Origin: Hyaloraphidium curvatum SAG 235-1
Lineage: Eukaryota; Fungi; Monoblepharomycota
Length of the DNA stretch: 64,000 nucleotides
Assembly: GCA_025558095.1 (NCBI GenBank)
Contig: JAIVFI010000042.1
Span: 372,001 to 436,000 of the forward strand
Direction of reading: 5' to 3'
The notes beneath the pieces were generated by a model. The model was not told the DNA's origin. It saw only the letters and a list, made by a program, of their open reading frames with translations, and did not search any database. Made by a program: the position numbers and the translations under genes. Positions within the stretch are counted from its first letter, which is position 1. Each line of letters starts with the position of its first letter. Shown piece after piece: positions 5,738 to 47,774 of this stretch.

Positions 5738-7295
5738 TCAGGGCGAAGGACATGCCACATCCAGCACAATCGCCACCCCGCTCGTCCGCAGCAACGACCA
5801 CACTGCTGCCAGCACGGTGATCGAGGTGACCAGCACCGTCCTGACCACGGCAACGCCAACGGGAAAGCCAGCAAACCGCGCGCGGTGCCGCTCGGCGGCG
5901 GCAAAGGCCGCGAGCACCTCGGCGTGATATCGCAAAGGGCTCGAGGGGTCGCCGCCGGCGGCTACGAGGCAAGCAGTGCGGGCGCGCAAACAAAGGTCGG
6001 AGATGGCGGAGATTTCCGAGTTAGAGGCGGCGATGTTGATCAGGTCCGTCATGAGAATGAAGAGGGTAAAGGCGAGGAGGATCACCACCCAGAGTGGGAC
6101 GCAAGCACCGGCAATCTGTCAGGGCCGGATTAAGACGGTTCTGTGTCGGCCTAAAAGGTGCCGGAAGTGAACCCACGATGTTGGTGATCGAAACGATGCA
6201 CACGGTGGCCAAGTACATAACCACGGCCATGCTTCCAGATTGAAGCACGGGCGAACGCTTCTCCCAGACCGCGACAAGGCTCAAGTGGAAGTCTACGTAC
6301 GGCTGTCGGCTCCTGGGGGTCGGCGGCGTTTGCGGCTTCTCCAGCATGTCCATCAGAAGGAGACTCATGGCGCGGTGATGCAATCGCATCGTCAACTTGG
6401 AAGCGGAAATGCTGCCCGAGGTGCGGTAGATCGCGAGGCCAGTGAAGAAGTCGGCAGTGTAGGCCAGCCAGGCGGCCGTTATCAGCCCTGCCCACCAGAT
6501 GCTCCACGTCCAGGGAGCAAGCGTGATGGTAGCGGTCGAAGCCACCAGCCAGAAAGAAGCCACAGGGAGCAGAATGCGAAGTGGGAGTTCCAAAAGGCGC
6601 AGGCGGCCCGCGGAGCGCATCAGACCGCCTGCGCAGGAATTCCTGGAGCAGGGACAGAGCTTGTCGGCCGGATCATGCGCCAAGAGCTTCGATGCTAGAC
6701 CCGCCCGGTCGGCTTCGGGGTCTGCCTCGGAGTCGGCACCGGGCAATGGCGCGTCCAGACCGCTGCTGCCTTTCCTGACCAGCGATTTCCAGCGCGCAAA
6801 GACGGCTAGTGGGTGCCCAGCGGCGTCTGCGTCCAAGCCGACCTGCGCGCCGACCAAGGGTTTCCGGAATCCGTGCAAGTAGCCGGCAGAGGCTATTCCC
6901 CCGGCAACCACTGCCAAGGAGCAGAGGCCGGTGGATAGCATGGAGGCCAGCATTGCCTGCGCCGAAAACAGCGAGCCGCGCCCGACATAAGTCACGGCCA
7001 GTAGCGGCCATTCCAGCAAGGCCAAAATGGCCAGCCTGGGGACGAACGAGGTGCCGCGGCCGACGAACGCAAACTGCAGCCGCGCCAGGCCGCGCAGCGG
7101 CTGCGGCAGCTCGGCCAGCAGCGCGCGTCGCGAGAGCGGCGCGTGTTCCCGGGCAGCGCCGGCGGGGTCGGCGGGCGCCGGGATGCCGAGCTCGGGCTCA
7201 ACGGGGGGCGGCGTCGGGAAGAGCGCGAGCGCCTCCGCCGCGCTGAACATGCCCAGCACAGGGGGCGACTTGTCAGCTATCTCATCGGACTCCAT
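5738..7295 (-). CDS. Uncharacterised 7-TM membrane protein, family member 1 (498 aa, 1 intron)
   Basis: Intron 6116-6176 (GTGGGT..CAG) joins ...SITNI|IAGACVPLWVVILL...; shares HPLAVFAR, HDxxDxLCPC, RLHxRA, GxCxP, DLxxxxASN, ARFxGFxV and WSxLRxxGV motifs with the ORFs at 32771, 38528 and 45348. Confidence 0.75.
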
Positions 7296-31498: not shown

Positions 31499-32572
31499 TT
31501 AGGCCCTCGGCATCGAGTCCTTGTTCGGGCCAAGTTGGACCGCAGCCTCTAGGAACTCCTCGAGATCGGGCTCCCGGACACCGCCGACGCCGATCACGAG
31601 TTGCCACATCGCGACCTCGGCGATGAGCGCCCGCATGCCTGCGACGCCCAAATCTTCCAGCGACGGCATGCCGAAGCTCCCGACAGAGATGCGGAGGCCG
31701 CGGTCGGCTCGGTTGACGATCTCCCTGGGGTCGCCCGGGCCGGAGAGCACCATCCGTTCGACGACCAGCTCCTGGAGCCCCTGCGGCACGCCGGAACGGA
31801 ACAAGGCCGAAGAACTGAGCTCGCCGATCTCGAGGAACTTGACCGAATCCAGTGCGGCGATGGTGCTGTACGTTGATTCGTCCAAGGCACCGTCGCACGT
31901 GATGCGCTCCGGTCGGAAGTATTCCGGGCACATGGCGAGCATGATCAATATCCCGGTGCCTCTCCAGGCCTTGATCTGGGGCATGATCTCTCGGTTTAAT
32001 AGCACCCAGAAGATTCCGAATTGGGAATCATCGTCGTCCAGCCTCAGGCTGAGATGGTCAAGGACCCCAGCTCCTGCGACGAGGTGCGTGAGGACGTAGT
32101 TAAAGGGGTGAATGTCCTGTGCCCAGTAATTCAGCCTCTTCAGATTCGGGAGTTCAAAGGCAGGCGGGCCCGTGGGGTCTTCCAAAACGGTCCCTGAGCT
32201 GTCGATGACTTCGAGCTCCCTGACACTCCTCGGCACGCTCCTCAGCACCTGGCACATTGTCTCGTAGTTTCCGAACTCGAGCTTCGCCGAAACGAGGTTC
32301 GTTCAAAGAGTCCGACTCCACAAGAGGTCGAGCAGCTCGTCGACGCCTCCCTCCTGCCACGCACCGCAGCCCGACTCGACCCTCTGGACGTGTCGGAGCC
32401 ATCCGCGTGCGCGCCAGCGCTCGACTCTCTCGTCAAGCAGCTCCAGAGGACGCGGGTCGTGCGCAAAGACCGAGAACGCGAGCGGTTCGACGAGCAGCCC
32501 CCGGCGGGGAAGGAAGAGCGCGATGTGGGAGATGATTTCGGGAGGGAAGACGAGGGGAGTGTCGGTTTCCAT
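31499..32572 (-). pseudogene. F-box/LRR-like gene with in-frame TGA (32303-32305), copy 1
   Basis: METDTPLVFPPEIISHIALFL (F-box-like); frame continues WSRTL*TNLVSAKLEFGNYETMCQV into LRR-like ORF 31499-32257; 36-bp in-frame deletion relative to copy 2. Confidence 0.65.
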
Positions 32573-32770
32573 GGTGTTTTCTGGATCCGTTGTGAAGGAG
32601 AGTTGTCGAGTCATCGGTCGGGGAAGCCAGCGCTCGCGCAAGCGCAAGGCTCGTGGAAAAGAACCTCAACGTCAAAGAGTCTCCATCAACCGGGCCCTTT
32701 TTATTCAGGTGCAACTCGGCCAACGACCATCACGGCACTCGGCCTGCCTTTGTATTAAGATTGCCCGGCA

Positions 32771-34276
32771 TCACCCGCACGTCGGGTACAGCGTCACCTG
32801 CACCCCGCCGCCCCTCAGAATGCTCCACAGCCCGATCGCCAGCGTCAGCGCGGTCGCCGCGACGTTCCTCGCCGTGGCGGCATCCACGCGGAACCCCATG
32901 AATCTGGCGTAATAGCCGTCCGAAGCGTCGAAAAAGGCCGAGATGAGGCGGTCGTGGTGCGCTGCGAGGCGCTGCGCAGCTTCGGAACCCGGGCCAGACA
33001 CGTCGAGCTCGTACCGAGCGCGGCGGAGGGACGTGCGTGCCAACCTGAACAGGGATGAGATGACCGACACGTGCGCGTTACTGGCAGTGAACAAAGCCAG
33101 GTCCGCCCCAACGATGAACGCGATCGCGGCGAGGGTGGCGAGCGAGGCGCCGGGCAGGCAGTTGCCCAGCGCGATCCCCGCCACGGCAACCGCGACGGCA
33201 TACAGCGGGAGGGGGATGAGGACGGAGGGACCCGAGGTAACGCGGTGGATGCGCGTGCGCCATGTGGGGCCGAGGGCATCCTGCAGGAGGAGGTACGGTT
33301 CCTGGGGCGGGGGCGATGGGCCATGCCCAGATGCGAAGGTGCGGTATCGCGCGAGGAGCCCGCGGAGGGCAAGGGTAGAAGCGCGGCGGTGTAGCCGCAG
33401 GGCAAACTGGATGGCGGCCACGTTGGCGCGGGCGCTGGCGAGTTGGTTGACATTGTGGTACTCCAGCGCCAGGGCTGCGACTAGCACGCAGAGCGATGCG
33501 GCCCAAGGGGAGTTCCAAGTGATGGAGGCGTAGGCGACGGCGGGCATTGAGAGGTAGATGGTGAAGTAAAAGGTGAACGATGCGCAAGCGTACCCAACGA
33601 ACTCGAGCAGGCGAAACGCGGCCGCCCGGCCGGCCAGCTTGCCCGCACATTGGGTGCCGGGACACGGGCACAGCGGATCCGACGCGTCGTGTCGCAGCAG
33701 TAACGAGCCCGGCTCCGCGTCGCGCAGCTGCGCGTATCGGGCGAACACGGCCAGAGGGTGTGCCGAGAGGTCCGACGGCGAGCCGAAGCGGCGCGAATAG
33801 GCGTTGCCAAAGAAGATGATCACGATGCCGGTCAGAAACGCGTGCAGCAGGGTGACGAAGGTGGAGACTGCCAGCTGCGGCGGAGAGAACCGGCCGAGTT
33901 CCCCTGCAAACGCCCACTGAATGGAGACAAGAGCTGAGCCTGTTCCGAAAAAAAGAGCTGCACGCAGATTGTGCCACGGCACGGCGTACTTTGCCAGAAC
34001 CAGCTGCACGCGCACGAACTGGGTGAGGAGGGGAGACGCCGCGAGCGCCGAGACAAGGTCATCGCGCGTGAGGGGAGACGATACCCTCAGCGAAGCAGCG
34101 GGGTCGGCCGATGGCTCTTCCTCGTCCACCTCGTCGGTTCCGGGAACGGTCGGCGCGGGAAAGAGGGCTATCCATTCGCGGGCGGTGAACGACGAGAGGG
34201 GTGCCCCTTTGTCTCCCGCGCCTTCCGCCTTCTCCAGGTCCACGGAAACCACCGCCTCGCGCGAAGAGTCTCCCAT
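32771..34276 (-). CDS. Uncharacterised 7-TM membrane protein, family member 2 (intact, intronless, 501 aa)
   Basis: Seven hydrophobic segments; ends HHDRLISAFFDASDGYYARFMGFRVDAATARNVAATALTLAIGLWSILRGGGVQVTLYPTCG; homologous to 5738, 38528, 45348. Confidence 0.8.
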   Translation of the reverse strand: MGDSSREAVVSVDLEKAEGAGDKGAPLSSFTAREWIALFPAPTVPGTDEVDEEEPSADPAASLRVSSPLTRDDLVSALAASPLLTQFVRVQLVLAKYAVPWHNLRAALFFGTGSALVSIQWAFAGELGRFSPPQLAVSTFVTLLHAFLTGIVIIFFGNAYSRRFGSPSDLSAHPLAVFARYAQLRDAEPGSLLLRHDASDPLCPCPGTQCAGKLAGRAAAFRLLEFVGYACASFTFYFTIYLSMPAVAYASITWNSPWAASLCVLVAALALEYHNVNQLASARANVAAIQFALRLHRRASTLALRGLLARYRTFASGHGPSPPPQEPYLLLQDALGPTWRTRIHRVTSGPSVLIPLPLYAVAVAVAGIALGNCLPGASLATLAAIAFIVGADLALFTASNAHVSVISSLFRLARTSLRRARYELDVSGPGSEAAQRLAAHHDRLISAFFDASDGYYARFMGFRVDAATARNVAATALTLAIGLWSILRGGGVQVTLYPTCG

Positions 34277-38527: not shown

Positions 38528-40035
38528 ATGAGCACTGAGCCACGCGAATCGTCGGTGTGCTTGGACGCGGGCGACAAGGCCAATGGCGCGGGGGACAGAG
38601 ACGCACCCCTCGCGACGTTCAGCGCGCGAGAATCGGTTGCGCTCTTCCCAGCGCCGCCCGGCCCCGGGACCGACGAACTGGAGGATACGACCCCGACCGA
38701 CCCCGCGGCGGAGCTCAGGGCGTCGTGCCCGCTCTCCCGCGAGGACCTGCTTTCCGGGCTCGCCGCGTCTCCCATCCTCTCCCTGTTCGTGCGCGTGCAG
38801 CTGGTCCTGGCAAAGTATGCCGTGCCGTGGCACAATCTGCGCGCAGCTCTATTTTTCGGAACAGGCCCAGCCCTTGTTTCCATTCAGTGGGCGTTTGCGG
38901 GGGAGCTCGGTCGGTTCTCTCGCCGCAGCTCGCCGTCTCTACTTTCGTCACCCTGCTGCACGTGTCCCTGACCGCCTTTGTGGTCATATTCTTTGGCCAA
39001 GTGTACACGCGCCGCTTTGGCTCGCCGACGGACTTGTCGGCACACCCGCTGGCCGTGTTTGCCCGTTACTACCAGCTTCGCTCAATGGAGCCCGGGTCGT
39101 TGCTTCTTTGCCACGATGCTTCCGATTCTCTGTGTCCATGTGCCAAACCCCTGTGTGCAGGAATGTTGCTCCGTCGAGCGGCCGCGCTGCGCGTGCTCGA
39201 GGCCGTTGTGCACGCCTGCGTTTCGCTCGCTTTCTACTTCACAATTTACCTCTCAATGCCCTCCGTTGCCTACGCATCCATCACCTGGAACTCCCCCTGG
39301 GCGGCAGCGCTCTGCGCTGCTTATTCTGCCTTGGTGGTCGAGTACCACTGGGTCAACCATCTTGCCGGCGCGCGCGCCAACGTCGTCGCCATCCAGCTCG
39401 CCCTGCGGTTGCACCGCCGCGCCTCCATCCTCGCGCTCCGCGGCCTGATTGCGCGCTACCGCACCCTCGCCTCGGCCTATCCCACGTTTCCTTCGCCGGA
39501 GGAGCCGTACCTCCTCTTGCAGGGCGCCCTTGGCCCCACGTGGCGCACGCGAATCGAGCGCGTGACCTCGGGCCCCTCGGTCCTCATCCCCCTCCCCGTG
39601 TACGCCGTCGCGGTCGCGGTGGCCGGGATCGCCCTCGGGAATTGCCTGCCGGCTCCTTCGGTTTCGACGTGCGCAGTGATCGCATTCATCGTGACGGCAG
39701 ACTTGGCGGTGTTCACGGCGAGCAACGCCCACGTGTCGGCCATCACGTCGCTCTTCAGATCGGCGCTCACGTCCCTCCGCCGCGCCCGCTACGAGCTCGA
39801 CAAGGGCGGCGCCGCGGGGTCCGACGCGGCGCAGCGTTTCGGCGACCACCACGACCGCCTCATCTCGGCCTTTTTCGACGCCTCGGACGGCTACTACGCC
39901 AGGTTCATGGGGTTCCGCGTGGATGCTGCCACGGCACGGAACGTTGCGGCGACTGCGCTCACCCTGGGGATCGGGCTGTGGAGCATACTGAGGGGCGGCG
40001 GGGTGCAGGTGACGCTGTACCCGACGTGCGGGTGA
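38528..40035 (+). pseudogene. 7-TM family member 3, single-base frameshift at ~38920
   Basis: cggttctct-cgccgcag lacks one C relative to member 2 (cggttctctccgccgcag); otherwise full-length and colinear. Confidence 0.75.
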
Positions 40036-41350
40036 TGCCGGGCAATCTTAATACAAAGGCAGGCCGAGTGCCGTAATGGTCGTTGGCCGAGTTGCACCTG
40101 AATAAAAAGGGCCCGGTTGATGGAGACTCTTTGACGTTGAGGTTCTTTTCCACGAGCCTTGCGCTTGCGCGAGCGCTGGCTTCCCCGACCGATGACTCGA
40201 CAACTCTCCTTCACAACGGATCCAGAAAACACCATGGAAACCGACACTCCCCTCGTCTTCCCTCCCGAAATCATCTCCCACATCGCGCTCTTCCTTCCCC
40301 GCCGGGGGCTGCTCGTGCTGGCCGGCGCCTCGCGGTCCGCGCTCGCGCTCGTCGAACCGCTCGCGTTCTCGGTCTTTGCGCACGACCCGCGTCCTCTGGA
40401 GCTGCTTGACGAGAGAGTCGAGCGCTGGCGCGCACGCGGATGGCTCCGACACGTCCAGAGGGTCGAGTCGGGCTGCGGTGCGTGGCAGGAGGGAGGCGTC
40501 GACGAGCTGCTCGACCTCTTGTGGAGTCGGACTCTTTGAACGAACCTCGTTTCGGCGAAGCTCGCATTCAGCAACTACGAATCAATGTGCGGCGTGCTGC
40601 GGAGCCTTATTATGCCGCGGAACATCAGCGAGCTTGAAGTCGTGGACCCCTCGGGGAGGCCTTTGCGTGCGGACCCCCTGGGGCCCTTCGAGATCCCGAA
40701 TGTGAAGCACCTCAAGTACTCGGCCAAAGGCATCGATCGTCTGAACTTTGCCATCACGCACCTCGTCAGCGGAAGCTTTAGACTGGAAAGTCTCGACCTG
40801 GGCGTGGACGTCGAGGATTCTGAACGAGTCCACTGGATGATAAACAACTACTCAATTCTGCGCACGATCACAGCTTGGAGCGGTACCGGCAAGGTGTTTG
40901 CTTCGGTTCCTGTGTGATTCAGCCGGCTTCCACCCCCAACGCATTGCGTGCGATGCCGTGGCGGACGGTCCCACGATGAGGGCCCTCGCCGAGCTGCCTT
41001 CGGTCAAGTCGCTCAAGATTGCCGAGCTCACTTCGTCGAGCATCATCCACTGGGGCTTGCCGCGGGGTCTTCGGGAGCTGGTCGTGGACCGCCTGGTTCT
41101 CTCCGCAATCGGACCCCCTGCGAAAGTCCTGCAGCAAGCACGGCGGTTCGACCTCCACGTTTCCGTCGGTTTGTTCTGCATGCCGCCTTTGGAACAAATC
41201 GAAGAGGGCTACAAAGGCGTCGCATCGCTCCAAGGCGAGATCGCGTTGTGGCGGGACGTGGTCGGCGTCGATGTGGTCATGGCACCCGATCTCGCGGAGT
41301 TTCTGGAGGCTGCGGACATGCTACGAAGGTTCCGAACGCCGATGTGCTGG
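38528..41350. repeat. Right arm of inverted duplication IR2
   Basis: Reverse-complement homology to 31499-34276; outer end approximate. Confidence 0.85.
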
Positions 41351-45347: not shown

Positions 45348-46450
45348 TCACCAGCACGTCGGGTAGAGCGTCACCTGCACCCCACCGCCCCTCAGTATGC
45401 TCCACAGCCCGATCCCCGGCGTGAGCGCGGTCGCCGCGACGTTCCTCGCCGATCCGGAAGCCCATGAACTTGGCAAAGCAGCCGTCCGAGGCGTCAAAAA
45501 GGCCAAGATGAGGCGGTCGTGGTGCGCCGCGATGTGCTGCGCCGCATCGGATCCGGCCGTGCCCTTGTCGAATTCGCAGCGCGCGCGGCGGAGCAACCCC
45601 CGCGCGGATCCGAGCAGCGAGGAGATGACCGACACGTGGGTGTTGCTCGCCGCGAACACGACCAGGTCCGCGGCGACGAGAAAGGCGACCAAGGCCGCCG
45701 TGGCCAGCGAGACAGCGAGACGGCGGGGAGGCAGTTCCCAAGGGCGAGCCGCGCCGCGGCGACCACGACGGCGTTCAGCGGGAAGGCGATCGCGAGCGAG
45801 GGACCGGAGGTGACGCGCTGGATGCGGGTTCTGGGCCATGTCCGGCCGAGGGCGTCCTGCAAGAGGAGGTACAGCTCCTCCGGCGGAGGATATGAGGGAT
45901 AGGCCGAAGCAAGGGTGCGGTAGCGCACGAAGAGGCCGCGGAGCGCGAGGGTGGAGGCGCGGCGGTGCAACCGCAGGGCGAGCTGGATGGCGACGACGTT
46001 GGCACGGGCGCCGGCGAGCACGTTTACAAGGGTGTATTCCACGGCCAGGGCAGCGAAAGCAGTGCAGAGCGCTGCGGCCCAGGGGGAGTTCCAGGTGATG
46101 GATGCGTAGGCAACGGAGGGCATTGAGAGGTAGATTGTGAAGTAGAAAGGAGCGAAACGCAGGCGTGCACAACGGCCTCCGCACGCGCAGCGCGGCCCCT
46201 CGACGGAGCAGCCTCCCTGCACACCGGGGCTCGGCACATGGGCACAGAGAATCGGAGGCATCATGGAAAAGAAGCAACGACCCGGGCTCCATTGAACGAA
46301 GCTGGTAGTTACGGGCAAACACGGCCAGCGGGTGTGCCGACAGGTCCGCCGGCGAGCCGAAGCGGCGCGTGTACACTTGGCCAAAGAATATGACCACAAA
46401 GGCGGTCATGAACACGTGAAGCAGGGTGACGAAGGTGGAGACGGCGAGCG
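45348..46450 (-). pseudogene. 7-TM family member 4, 5'-truncated with multiple frameshifts
   Basis: Begins at LAVSTFVTLLHVF (TM2); pieces in alternating frames; ends GLWSILRGGGVQVTLYPTCW; most similar to member 3. Confidence 0.8.
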
Positions 46451-47774
46451 GCGGCCCGGGGACCCGCTCGCGGCGACGACCGGTGGTCGCGCGAGGCAGC
46501 CGGTCCGACCGAGGGCAACGGCCGTCCGGAGCCTTCCCATGAACGGGGGAGCTTTCCCTGCGCCAATCTGCCGCAAGATGCGGGCCCGATGGCCGGCTCC
46601 CGGAGGCGCTCCGGAGAAGGCGGCGGGGACGGAGGGATGGCGCCGCGTCCGGGGCCGACGACCGGGATTCAGTCGGTTCCCGCTTTCTTTGCGATGAGGA
46701 AGCTCCCGTTTCCGCGTCCGGATCCCTCGGGCGCGGTCCGCGGAGCCCGCGGGGGGATCGGCGGCCAATCGCAAGACTGTCCGGCGCAACGGTCGACGGG
46801 CGCGCCCCGGGATCGACATGGAGGCCCGAGATGTTGCTATGGATCGAAGATGCGGTCGAGTGCGGCGTCTTCCCTGGTGTCGTGGGGGGCCGCGAGGTGG
46901 GGGAGGCAAAGCAGCTGTCACCCCGCGTTCGACCGCCGCCGTGGGAGCGGAACAGTACATCGCGCCCGCGGAGCCGCCGGATCGGCATCAAAGACGGGCG
47001 AGGGCGGACCGGGTGCGGCACGGCGTCATTGGCGGTCGCGCGGAGGATCGGGCGCGGCGGTGGCGGGCGCTTGCCGTACGGAGACCGTTCTCACGTGCCA
47101 TCCGCGGCCGGGTGCGCTCCCGGAGGAGGATTCCGTCCGATCGGAGGCCAATCACACGTATCCATCCCACCGCAGCCTGTTCGCTCCGCCGCTTGTGCCG
47201 CTGCGGGCGCATCCTAGGTGGGCCCGCGACGATCTTCGGGGCCAGGCTATTCGGGGCTTGGGCCGGGCCAGCTTTGCCGACAAAGGGCCCAGCAAGCGCA
47301 CCACCACCCCGCACGCACCAGGTGAGCAGCGCACCGCCGCAACGGGCGGGCGCAGCGCGGGCGCGACAGGAGGCTGCCGGCGGCGGCGCGCGGCGCGGGG
47401 CCGGGGGCGCCGAGCGCGGGCCGGGAGACAGTCAGCCGGGGGCCATCCCCCGCGCGGGCAACCCCGCCGCGCCAACCCGCGCGCAGCGCCATCGCGTCTA
47501 TTGCCGCCAGAAAGGGGCATCGGCCGGCGGCGCGGATGGCGGCGGGGCGCGGGCACCGGCGGGCGGCCGCGGGCGGGTGCCGGGAACCCGGTGCCGCCGG
47601 CGGATGCGCGCACCAACCCGCCCTGCCCGCGCTTCCAACGGCCGCGGGACGCCTCTCCGTCCTTTTGCCGACCGCGCGCGCACGGTGCTGACGCTCCCGC
47701 CCCGCTCCCGCCCCCCCGCGCCCGTTTGTTTCTTTTCCAGCTCTCCCTCCCCGCAACACCACCCGGCATCCGAA

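Follow-up and report, generated by a model that had tools for sequence, protein, structure and literature searches.

A gene of the fungus Hyaloraphidium curvatum, here called copy A, probably belongs to a very large family, orphan in sequence, that has the 7TMIC fold, and its product is, on the evidence of structure models and by analogy with the insect receptors of this fold, a putative N-in/C-out tetrameric ligand-gated channel. The gene is located in a stretch of 64 kb (the window, here and below) on contig C42 of a genome assembly of 31.9 Mb in 55 contigs, from an organism that belongs to the Monoblepharomycota, within chytridiomyceta. Insect odorant and gustatory receptors (ORs and GRs), of which Orco, MhOR5, AgamOR28, AaegOR10, BmGr9, Gr43a and Gr64a are examples, are tetrameric ligand-gated cation channels, and the 7TMIC fold is also found in animal GRLs, in plant DUF3537 proteins and in PHTF. 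The 7TMIC superfamily is defined by structure (Benton and Himmel, 2023; Himmel et al., 2023), and its hallmarks are seven transmembrane (TM) helices, long TM4-6 extending into the cytoplasm and a split TM7. In a preprint of 2023, 83 of 85 7TMICs are reported to give AlphaFold-Multimer homotetramers of fourfold symmetry, in which TM7b is on the axis and the TM4-6/7a bundle makes the contacts. [quoted passage not shown] The structural screens of 2023 either left out chytrids or found fungal members only sparsely, with Hyaloraphidium unmentioned, and our literature search found no paper linking this genus with insect-type receptors. The fold class is, then, already known; what is new is that the family is an orphan in sequence, that it has expanded in a fungus to the scale seen in insects, and that it has a His/Cys3 module in the first inner loop (IL1) together with an extracellular Cys pair.

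A tblastn search of the window with the 501-aa product of copy A recovers four family copies (Table 1), exactly the four homologs that a sequence-only reading of the same DNA had listed. That reading had counted two intact genes, one frameshifted gene and one fragment, and the tally is right (A and D, B and C, respectively), provided that copy D is counted with its intron. Copy B lacks a base at 38920/38921 (CTC, against CTCC in A) and is thereby shifted in frame; either it has recently become a pseudogene or the assembly is in error here. Copy C descends from the B lineage, its nucleotide identity being 85.7% to B versus 78.9% to A. Copy D was also considered as a frameshifted gene, and this was ruled out, the interruption being a clean GT-AG intron: when the exons are read separately each of them reads through, and every family motif is present across the two. 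The intron falls at profile position ~366, just before the GxCxP of the third outer loop (EL3), a site which is interrupted in many paralogs.

Table 1. Family copies, neighbouring genes and homogenised tract in the window (nt, window positions) and approximate layout of the copy A protein (aa, residues).
Feature	Position	Strand	Description
Copy A	nt 32771-34276	(-)	single exon, open from ATG to stop, 501 aa, intact
Copy B	nt 38528-40035	(+)	inverted paralog of copy A, 79% aa identity, 1-nt deletion
Copy C	nt 45348-46466	(-)	5'-truncated fragment, starts at codon ~129 of A, several frame-breaking indels
Copy D	nt 5741-7295	(-)	divergent, 25-34% identical, intact after removal of a 61-nt intron
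Copy D exon 1	nt 6177-7295	(-)	373 codons; motifs HPLAVFARW, HDxxDxLCPCxxxxCAG, RLHHRA
Copy D intron	nt 6116-6176	(-)	61 nt, phase 0, GTGGGT...CTGACAG
Copy D exon 2	nt 5741-6115	(-)	124 codons + stop; GACVP, TM6, TM7a, ARFAGFPV turn, TM7b, terminal Cys
F-box-type gene downstream of copy A	nt 31499-32647	(-)	
F-box-type gene downstream of copy B	nt 40159-41323	(+)	partner of 31499-32647
Homogenised tract	nt 32490-32993 vs 39813-40316		504 nt, 95.4% identical; ~78% over the rest of A vs B
TM0	aa 82-98		
TM1	aa 102-127		
TM2	aa 132-155		
IL1	aa 157-218		
TM3	aa 214-248		
TM4	aa 257-315		long
TM5	aa 327-371		
EL3			contains C373
TM6	aa 376-427		long
TM7a	aa 432-455		
Turn	aa 456-465		contains G461
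TM7b	aa 466-489		
C-terminal tail			contains C500

Beyond the window, a six-frame search of the genome, in which 86 of 728 first-look candidates were scored, gives at least 94 family matches. A profile (A1) built from 23 intact paralogs was searched exhaustively against 1.84 billion representative proteins and retrieved 460 proteins at E ≤ 1e-3, of which 292 reach E ≤ 1e-30; 19 of the 20 proteins sampled from the top 150 matches are H. curvatum hypothetical proteins, as is the nearest named protein to copy A. The DNA pattern for D-x2-C-P-C-x4-C occurs at 257 places in the genome and the reversed control at 4, and since 18 of the 23 A1 members have the exact form of the motif, these places suggest ~320 family loci, that is, roughly 300 or more family genes in H. 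curvatum. The 40 motif loci taken in genome order all have a family-profile match (L063 only through an adjacent copy); 18 of them are uninterrupted single exons, ~16 are interrupted by gaps of ~20-65 nt, most of which are intron-like, and ~5 are visibly broken, being truncated, internally deleted or frameshifted. The earlier proposal of a lineage expansion undergoing birth and death was, if anything, an understatement, with hundreds of members genome-wide and about 12% of these 40 loci broken. The interruptions recur at profile positions ~119, ~259 and ~366, the last of which is the intron site of copy D, and the common sites suggest intron-defined subfamilies beside intronless members; in loci L033-L037, L040, L044, L050, L052, L054, L055, L059, L066 and L067 they are mostly 40-65 nt long and fall at ~259 and ~366. 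The motif loci listed are on contigs C1-C17 and protein matches are on many more contigs, and the mean column identity among paralogs is 22%. Local clusters in both orientations are seen at C1:703987-732069, at C5:783992-816931 and on C10, at 808992(+) and 813173(-). The C10 pair lies on opposite strands and agrees over all 33 nt of the motif sequence, suggesting that it arose by inverted duplication very recently.

The twentieth sampled protein is encoded on an environmental contig (L071:237-1208; JGI metagenome 3300043314, also 3300050339). This contig has a GC content of 53-56% and is without a DNA match in the H. curvatum genome, and the protein that it encodes shares 53.5% identity with H. 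curvatum KAI9002171.1; on these grounds at least one further organism carries the family, and part of the diversification is older than that split. Homologue searches with the copy A protein, with the alignment and with the C-terminal region returned only the query and one paralog, the word pre-filter being swamped by this Ala/Arg-rich, GC-rich family, and a metagenome scan with alignment A3 gave 335 pattern matches and 0 relatives.

The architecture of the family agrees with what the sequence-only reading had claimed, namely seven segments, alternating short and long loops and the strongest conservation towards the C-terminus. Family-averaged hydropathy shows three hairpins and one further hydrophobic segment, seven segments in all, and DSSP of the two structure models described below gives TM1-TM7b; the count is seven in both cases. 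In the 23 paralogs, the outer loops TM1-2, TM3-4 and TM5-6 (EL1-EL3) have mean lengths of 5.9, 7.7 and 5.0 aa, versus 72.7, 74.1 and 67.2 aa for the inner loops TM2-3, TM4-5 and TM6-7 (IL1-IL3), and K+R number 13.7 in the membrane-flanking cytoplasmic segments versus 1.6 in the outer loops and tail. This charge bias, together with the loop asymmetry, supports an N-in/C-out topology. In this predicted topology the Cys pair faces outwards and the His/Cys3 cluster faces the cytoplasm. Among 98 members, conservation is 2.80 bits in EL3, 2.67 in TM7b, 2.41 in the 7a-7b turn and 2.24 in the C-terminal tail, versus 1.2-1.5 bits, the lowest values, in TM1-TM6. In IL1, H196, C203, C205 and C210 are invariant and D200 is conserved at 94%, in the pattern H-x3-D-x2-C-x-C-x4-C, and the loop is modelled at pLDDT 93-96 though it is largely non-helical; this cluster is a probable cytoplasmic zinc site. 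Further invariant residues are C373 in EL3 and N400 at the inner end of TM6, and R294/R298 in the TM4 extension, G461 (98%), R470, T478, R488, G491 and C500 are nearly invariant. A predicted extracellular disulfide between C373 and C500 is probable, because the model pairs the short strands 373-375 and 493-495.

The mechanism that we consider best supported is that of a putative tetrameric ligand-gated cation channel. The protein would be N-in/C-out, with seven TM helices, of which TM4, TM5 and TM6 would run on into the cytoplasm and, together with TM7a, form an anchor-type helical bundle, while a conserved G-containing turn would separate TM7a from TM7b. By analogy with the solved ORs and GRs, four subunits would be arranged around a central pore lined by TM7b and would be held together by the TM4-6/7a bundle; the ligand that gates the cation current would bind in the TM1-TM6 bundle, which evolves fast. 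The repertoire would grow and decay by local duplication, gene conversion and pseudogenisation. The pattern of conservation fits a receptor repertoire, and so do the family's size, divergence and turnover. Common to insect ORs and GRs and to the H. curvatum family, for which they are here predicted, are the seven TM helices, the N-in orientation, the short outer and long inner loops, the cytoplasmic bundle of long TM4-6 and TM7a, the split TM7 and TM7b as the most conserved segment, and both are large, fast-evolving families with pseudogenes and tandem clusters.

The 7TMIC fold could also serve a role other than environmental chemosensing, and the products would then be intracellular or housekeeping channels or scaffolds, or a repertoire for self/non-self or anti-parasite recognition engaged in an arms race. 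An intracellular or housekeeping role is suspected for PHTF, which is ER-resident. We regard such a role as unlikely, though not negligible: a family of hundreds of divergent paralogs, in which TM1-6 vary and TM7b is conserved, has the pattern of ligand-diversified receptors and not of housekeeping proteins, the F-box linkage is confined to the cassette of copies A and B, apart from a weak case at L010, and IL1, with 60-100 aa, is far shorter than that of PHTF. By description, PHTF-like (Class-B) 7TMICs are a single, highly conserved gene per genome, across eukaryotes, whereas the H. curvatum family is hugely expanded in one lineage and variable, with a much shorter IL1. The chytrid GRLs and plant DUF3537 proteins offer another comparison. 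Like them, the family is a non-animal 7TMIC candidate, here in an early-diverging fungus, with language-model features near the DUF3537 cluster; unlike them, since by description chytrid GRLs are single per fungus and DUF3537 proteins number 4-12 per plant and were found by similarity to GRLs, it has hundreds of members and no match to the 7tm_7, 7tm_6 or DUF3537 sequence models.

In Pfam, no match was found for the window copies at E ≤ 1, nor for the 23 paralogs at E ≤ 10; PDB sequences compared with the family profile gave one chance match only, at E 0.6. Searching the whole genome with PF12056 (DUF3537) and PF08395 (7tm_7) returned nothing, a result that says little since the control genomes were silent too. 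Because of the outcome of these HMM tests, the family does not qualify, as judged by sequence, as a member of Pfam 7tm_7 (PF08395), 7tm_6 (PF02949) or DUF3537 (PF12056). As for the GR TM7 motif TYhhhhhQF, TM7b of copy A reads T478-L-x5-S-I and at most T478 could correspond; the introns, too, are off the characteristic GRL last-intron position, many members being intronless and the rest interrupted at ~119, ~259 and ~366, not before TM7. The family is a sequence orphan, and its membership of the structure-defined 7TMIC superfamily is, on the models, supported but borderline.

Two structure models were considered, both from one predictor and with overlapping alignments: model 1 is copy A with a 23-sequence alignment, and model 2 is the paralog P0151, 25% identical to copy A, with a 98-sequence alignment. 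Both have a pLDDT of 88 and a pTM of 0.89. In each of them a TM6 of ~50 residues extends well beyond the membrane and is followed by TM7a, a short turn and TM7b, and TM4 and TM5 are also long, with helices at 257-280 and 286-315 (TM4), 327-342 and 355-371 (TM5) and 376-427 (TM6) in model 1, and at 261-313 (kinked), 319-372 and 377-425 in model 2. The split of TM7 consists, in model 1, of a helix at 432-455, a non-helical turn at 456-465 and a helix at 466-489, and model 2 is alike. A helix at 82-98 precedes TM1, and structural alignments to ORs and GRs begin at model residues 66-88, corresponding to chain residues 1-50.

Foldseek against the PDB gave nothing at E ≤ 1e-3, the best E-values being 0.01-0.5, and its top ranks are dominated by insect ORs and GRs, most of them at probability 0.8-1.0. 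The TM-scores to the solved ORs and GRs are 0.27-0.47, below the 'same fold' convention of 0.5; almost all other natural proteins have probabilities under 0.2, with a handful of designed helical proteins at 0.38-0.66. A search independent of Foldseek, with VIA-align over 48,161 PDB representatives, aligned all OR and GR entries near full-length and colinearly, over 296-346 residues, with both paralogs; among the matches listed only OR and GR entries are near full-length, the ones that follow are partial helical bundles aligned over 118-152 residues, and unrelated helical bundles as a whole align mostly over 80-200 and at most over ~216 residues. A GPCR or transporter fold was considered and rejected: Foldseek probabilities for such folds are below 0.2, the sole GPCR in the Foldseek lists has a probability of 0.07 and none is found in the VIA-align best 50. 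The nearest shapes in the ESM Atlas are unannotated models from Cnidaria (TM-scores 0.55/0.67) and Echinodermata (0.56/0.65), and the named clusters nearest to the language-model features of two paralogs include DUF3537, 7tm_7, Trehalose_recp and Tmp39, evidence that is weak yet independent of the structure models. Insect OR and GR 7TMICs are thus top for two models of proteins only 25% identical to each other, and are the best and, among the matches listed, the only full-length structural matches of the H. curvatum models; among accepted 7TMICs, however, the similarity ranks low, at the PHTF-like end. The 7TMIC-type reading of the window, which had also remarked on the absence of GPCR or rhodopsin motifs, in line with the lack of Pfam matches, is supported overall, none of the checks run having spoken against it.

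Against the 7TMIC reading stand the Pfam and PDB searches, which link the family by sequence to no 7TMIC family, and the Foldseek matches, with E-values of 0.01-0.5 and TM-scores of 0.27-0.47. A rival reading is that the resemblance is convergent or generic; the family would then be an unrelated, lineage-specific seven-helix membrane protein without channel function, in which long helices superpose on those of ORs and GRs by chance. The near full-length, colinear alignments, confined among the matches listed to OR and GR entries and obtained with two divergent paralogs, argue against this rival, as do the unusual split TM7 and the long TM4-6, which recur in both models, and the independent language-model features, which point to the DUF3537 and 7tm_7 clusters; we consider convergence quite improbable.

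Copies A and B form the two arms of an inverted duplication, each with an F-box-type gene downstream. In this F-box pair the N-terminal, F-box parts are 90% identical and the C-terminal parts only ~48%. Among the other sampled family loci an F-box match was found only at L010, and a weak one (33% identity, E 9e-5); a general operon-like pairing of 7TM and F-box genes was therefore rejected, being clear only at A and B. The homogenised tract takes in the 3' end of the receptor gene, which codes for TM7, and continues into the F-box gene next to it, and dS between A and B falls from ~0.6-0.8 to 0.33 in codons 429-501, the TM7 region; the high identity of the tract and the local drop in dS suggest gene conversion between the inverted arms of the cassette. 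Between A and B dN/dS is 0.23, at a dS of 0.61, and between A and its next paralogs it is 0.34-0.37; because of these values, the family members are real genes under purifying selection. That the copies are passengers of mobile elements or an artefact of segmental duplication, their number being uninformative on function, could be argued from the local clusters in both orientations, from the inverted two-gene cassette with its conversion tract in the window and from the existence of broken copies, but it is scarcely credible, and much less likely than a non-sensory 7TMIC role or convergence, with paralogs that are old, diverse (22% mean column identity) and under purifying selection, with intron positions that are conserved, copies that are spread over many contigs and an F-box gene that flanks only the A and B arms and, weakly, L010.

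The reading preferred here, a family of putative ligand-gated 7TMIC channels, would have consequences for both the organism and the fold. The 7TMICs known from outside animals are encoded by single genes or small families, and among them the repertoire of H. curvatum would far exceed all others in size; in a genome of 32 Mb, several hundred members would amount to a large share of the genes of this fungus. H. curvatum is not known to have flagella or a swimming stage; a sensory use of the family, if any, would therefore hardly be classical chemotaxis. It is conceivable, as a tentative extension to which we give somewhat less than even chances, that this non-motile planktonic fungus possesses 300-450 ligand-gated 7TMIC channels which arose independently, with the zinc module of IL1 perhaps coupling them to signalling or assembly. 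If this is true, large 7TMIC repertoires for chemosensing did not evolve in animals alone, the view of where ionotropic receptors can form large repertoires would change, and the question is raised of what a non-swimming unicell senses with such a repertoire. Hundreds of natural variants would also become available for the study of ligand binding and gating by the 7TMIC fold, where the rules of both are still under study; the family gives a deep alignment of natural sequences, and its His/Cys3 loop and extracellular Cys pair are structural novelties that can be tested.

The cytoplasmic N-terminus of copy A, at residues 30-70 (window ~34067-34189), has the motifs FSxxEWLALFP and DPxxxLRxxxPLT, without an OR or GR counterpart, in which P40 is 99% conserved and the pLDDT around 31-40 is 96. 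On the environmental contig, an SNF2-related gene adjoins the family member.
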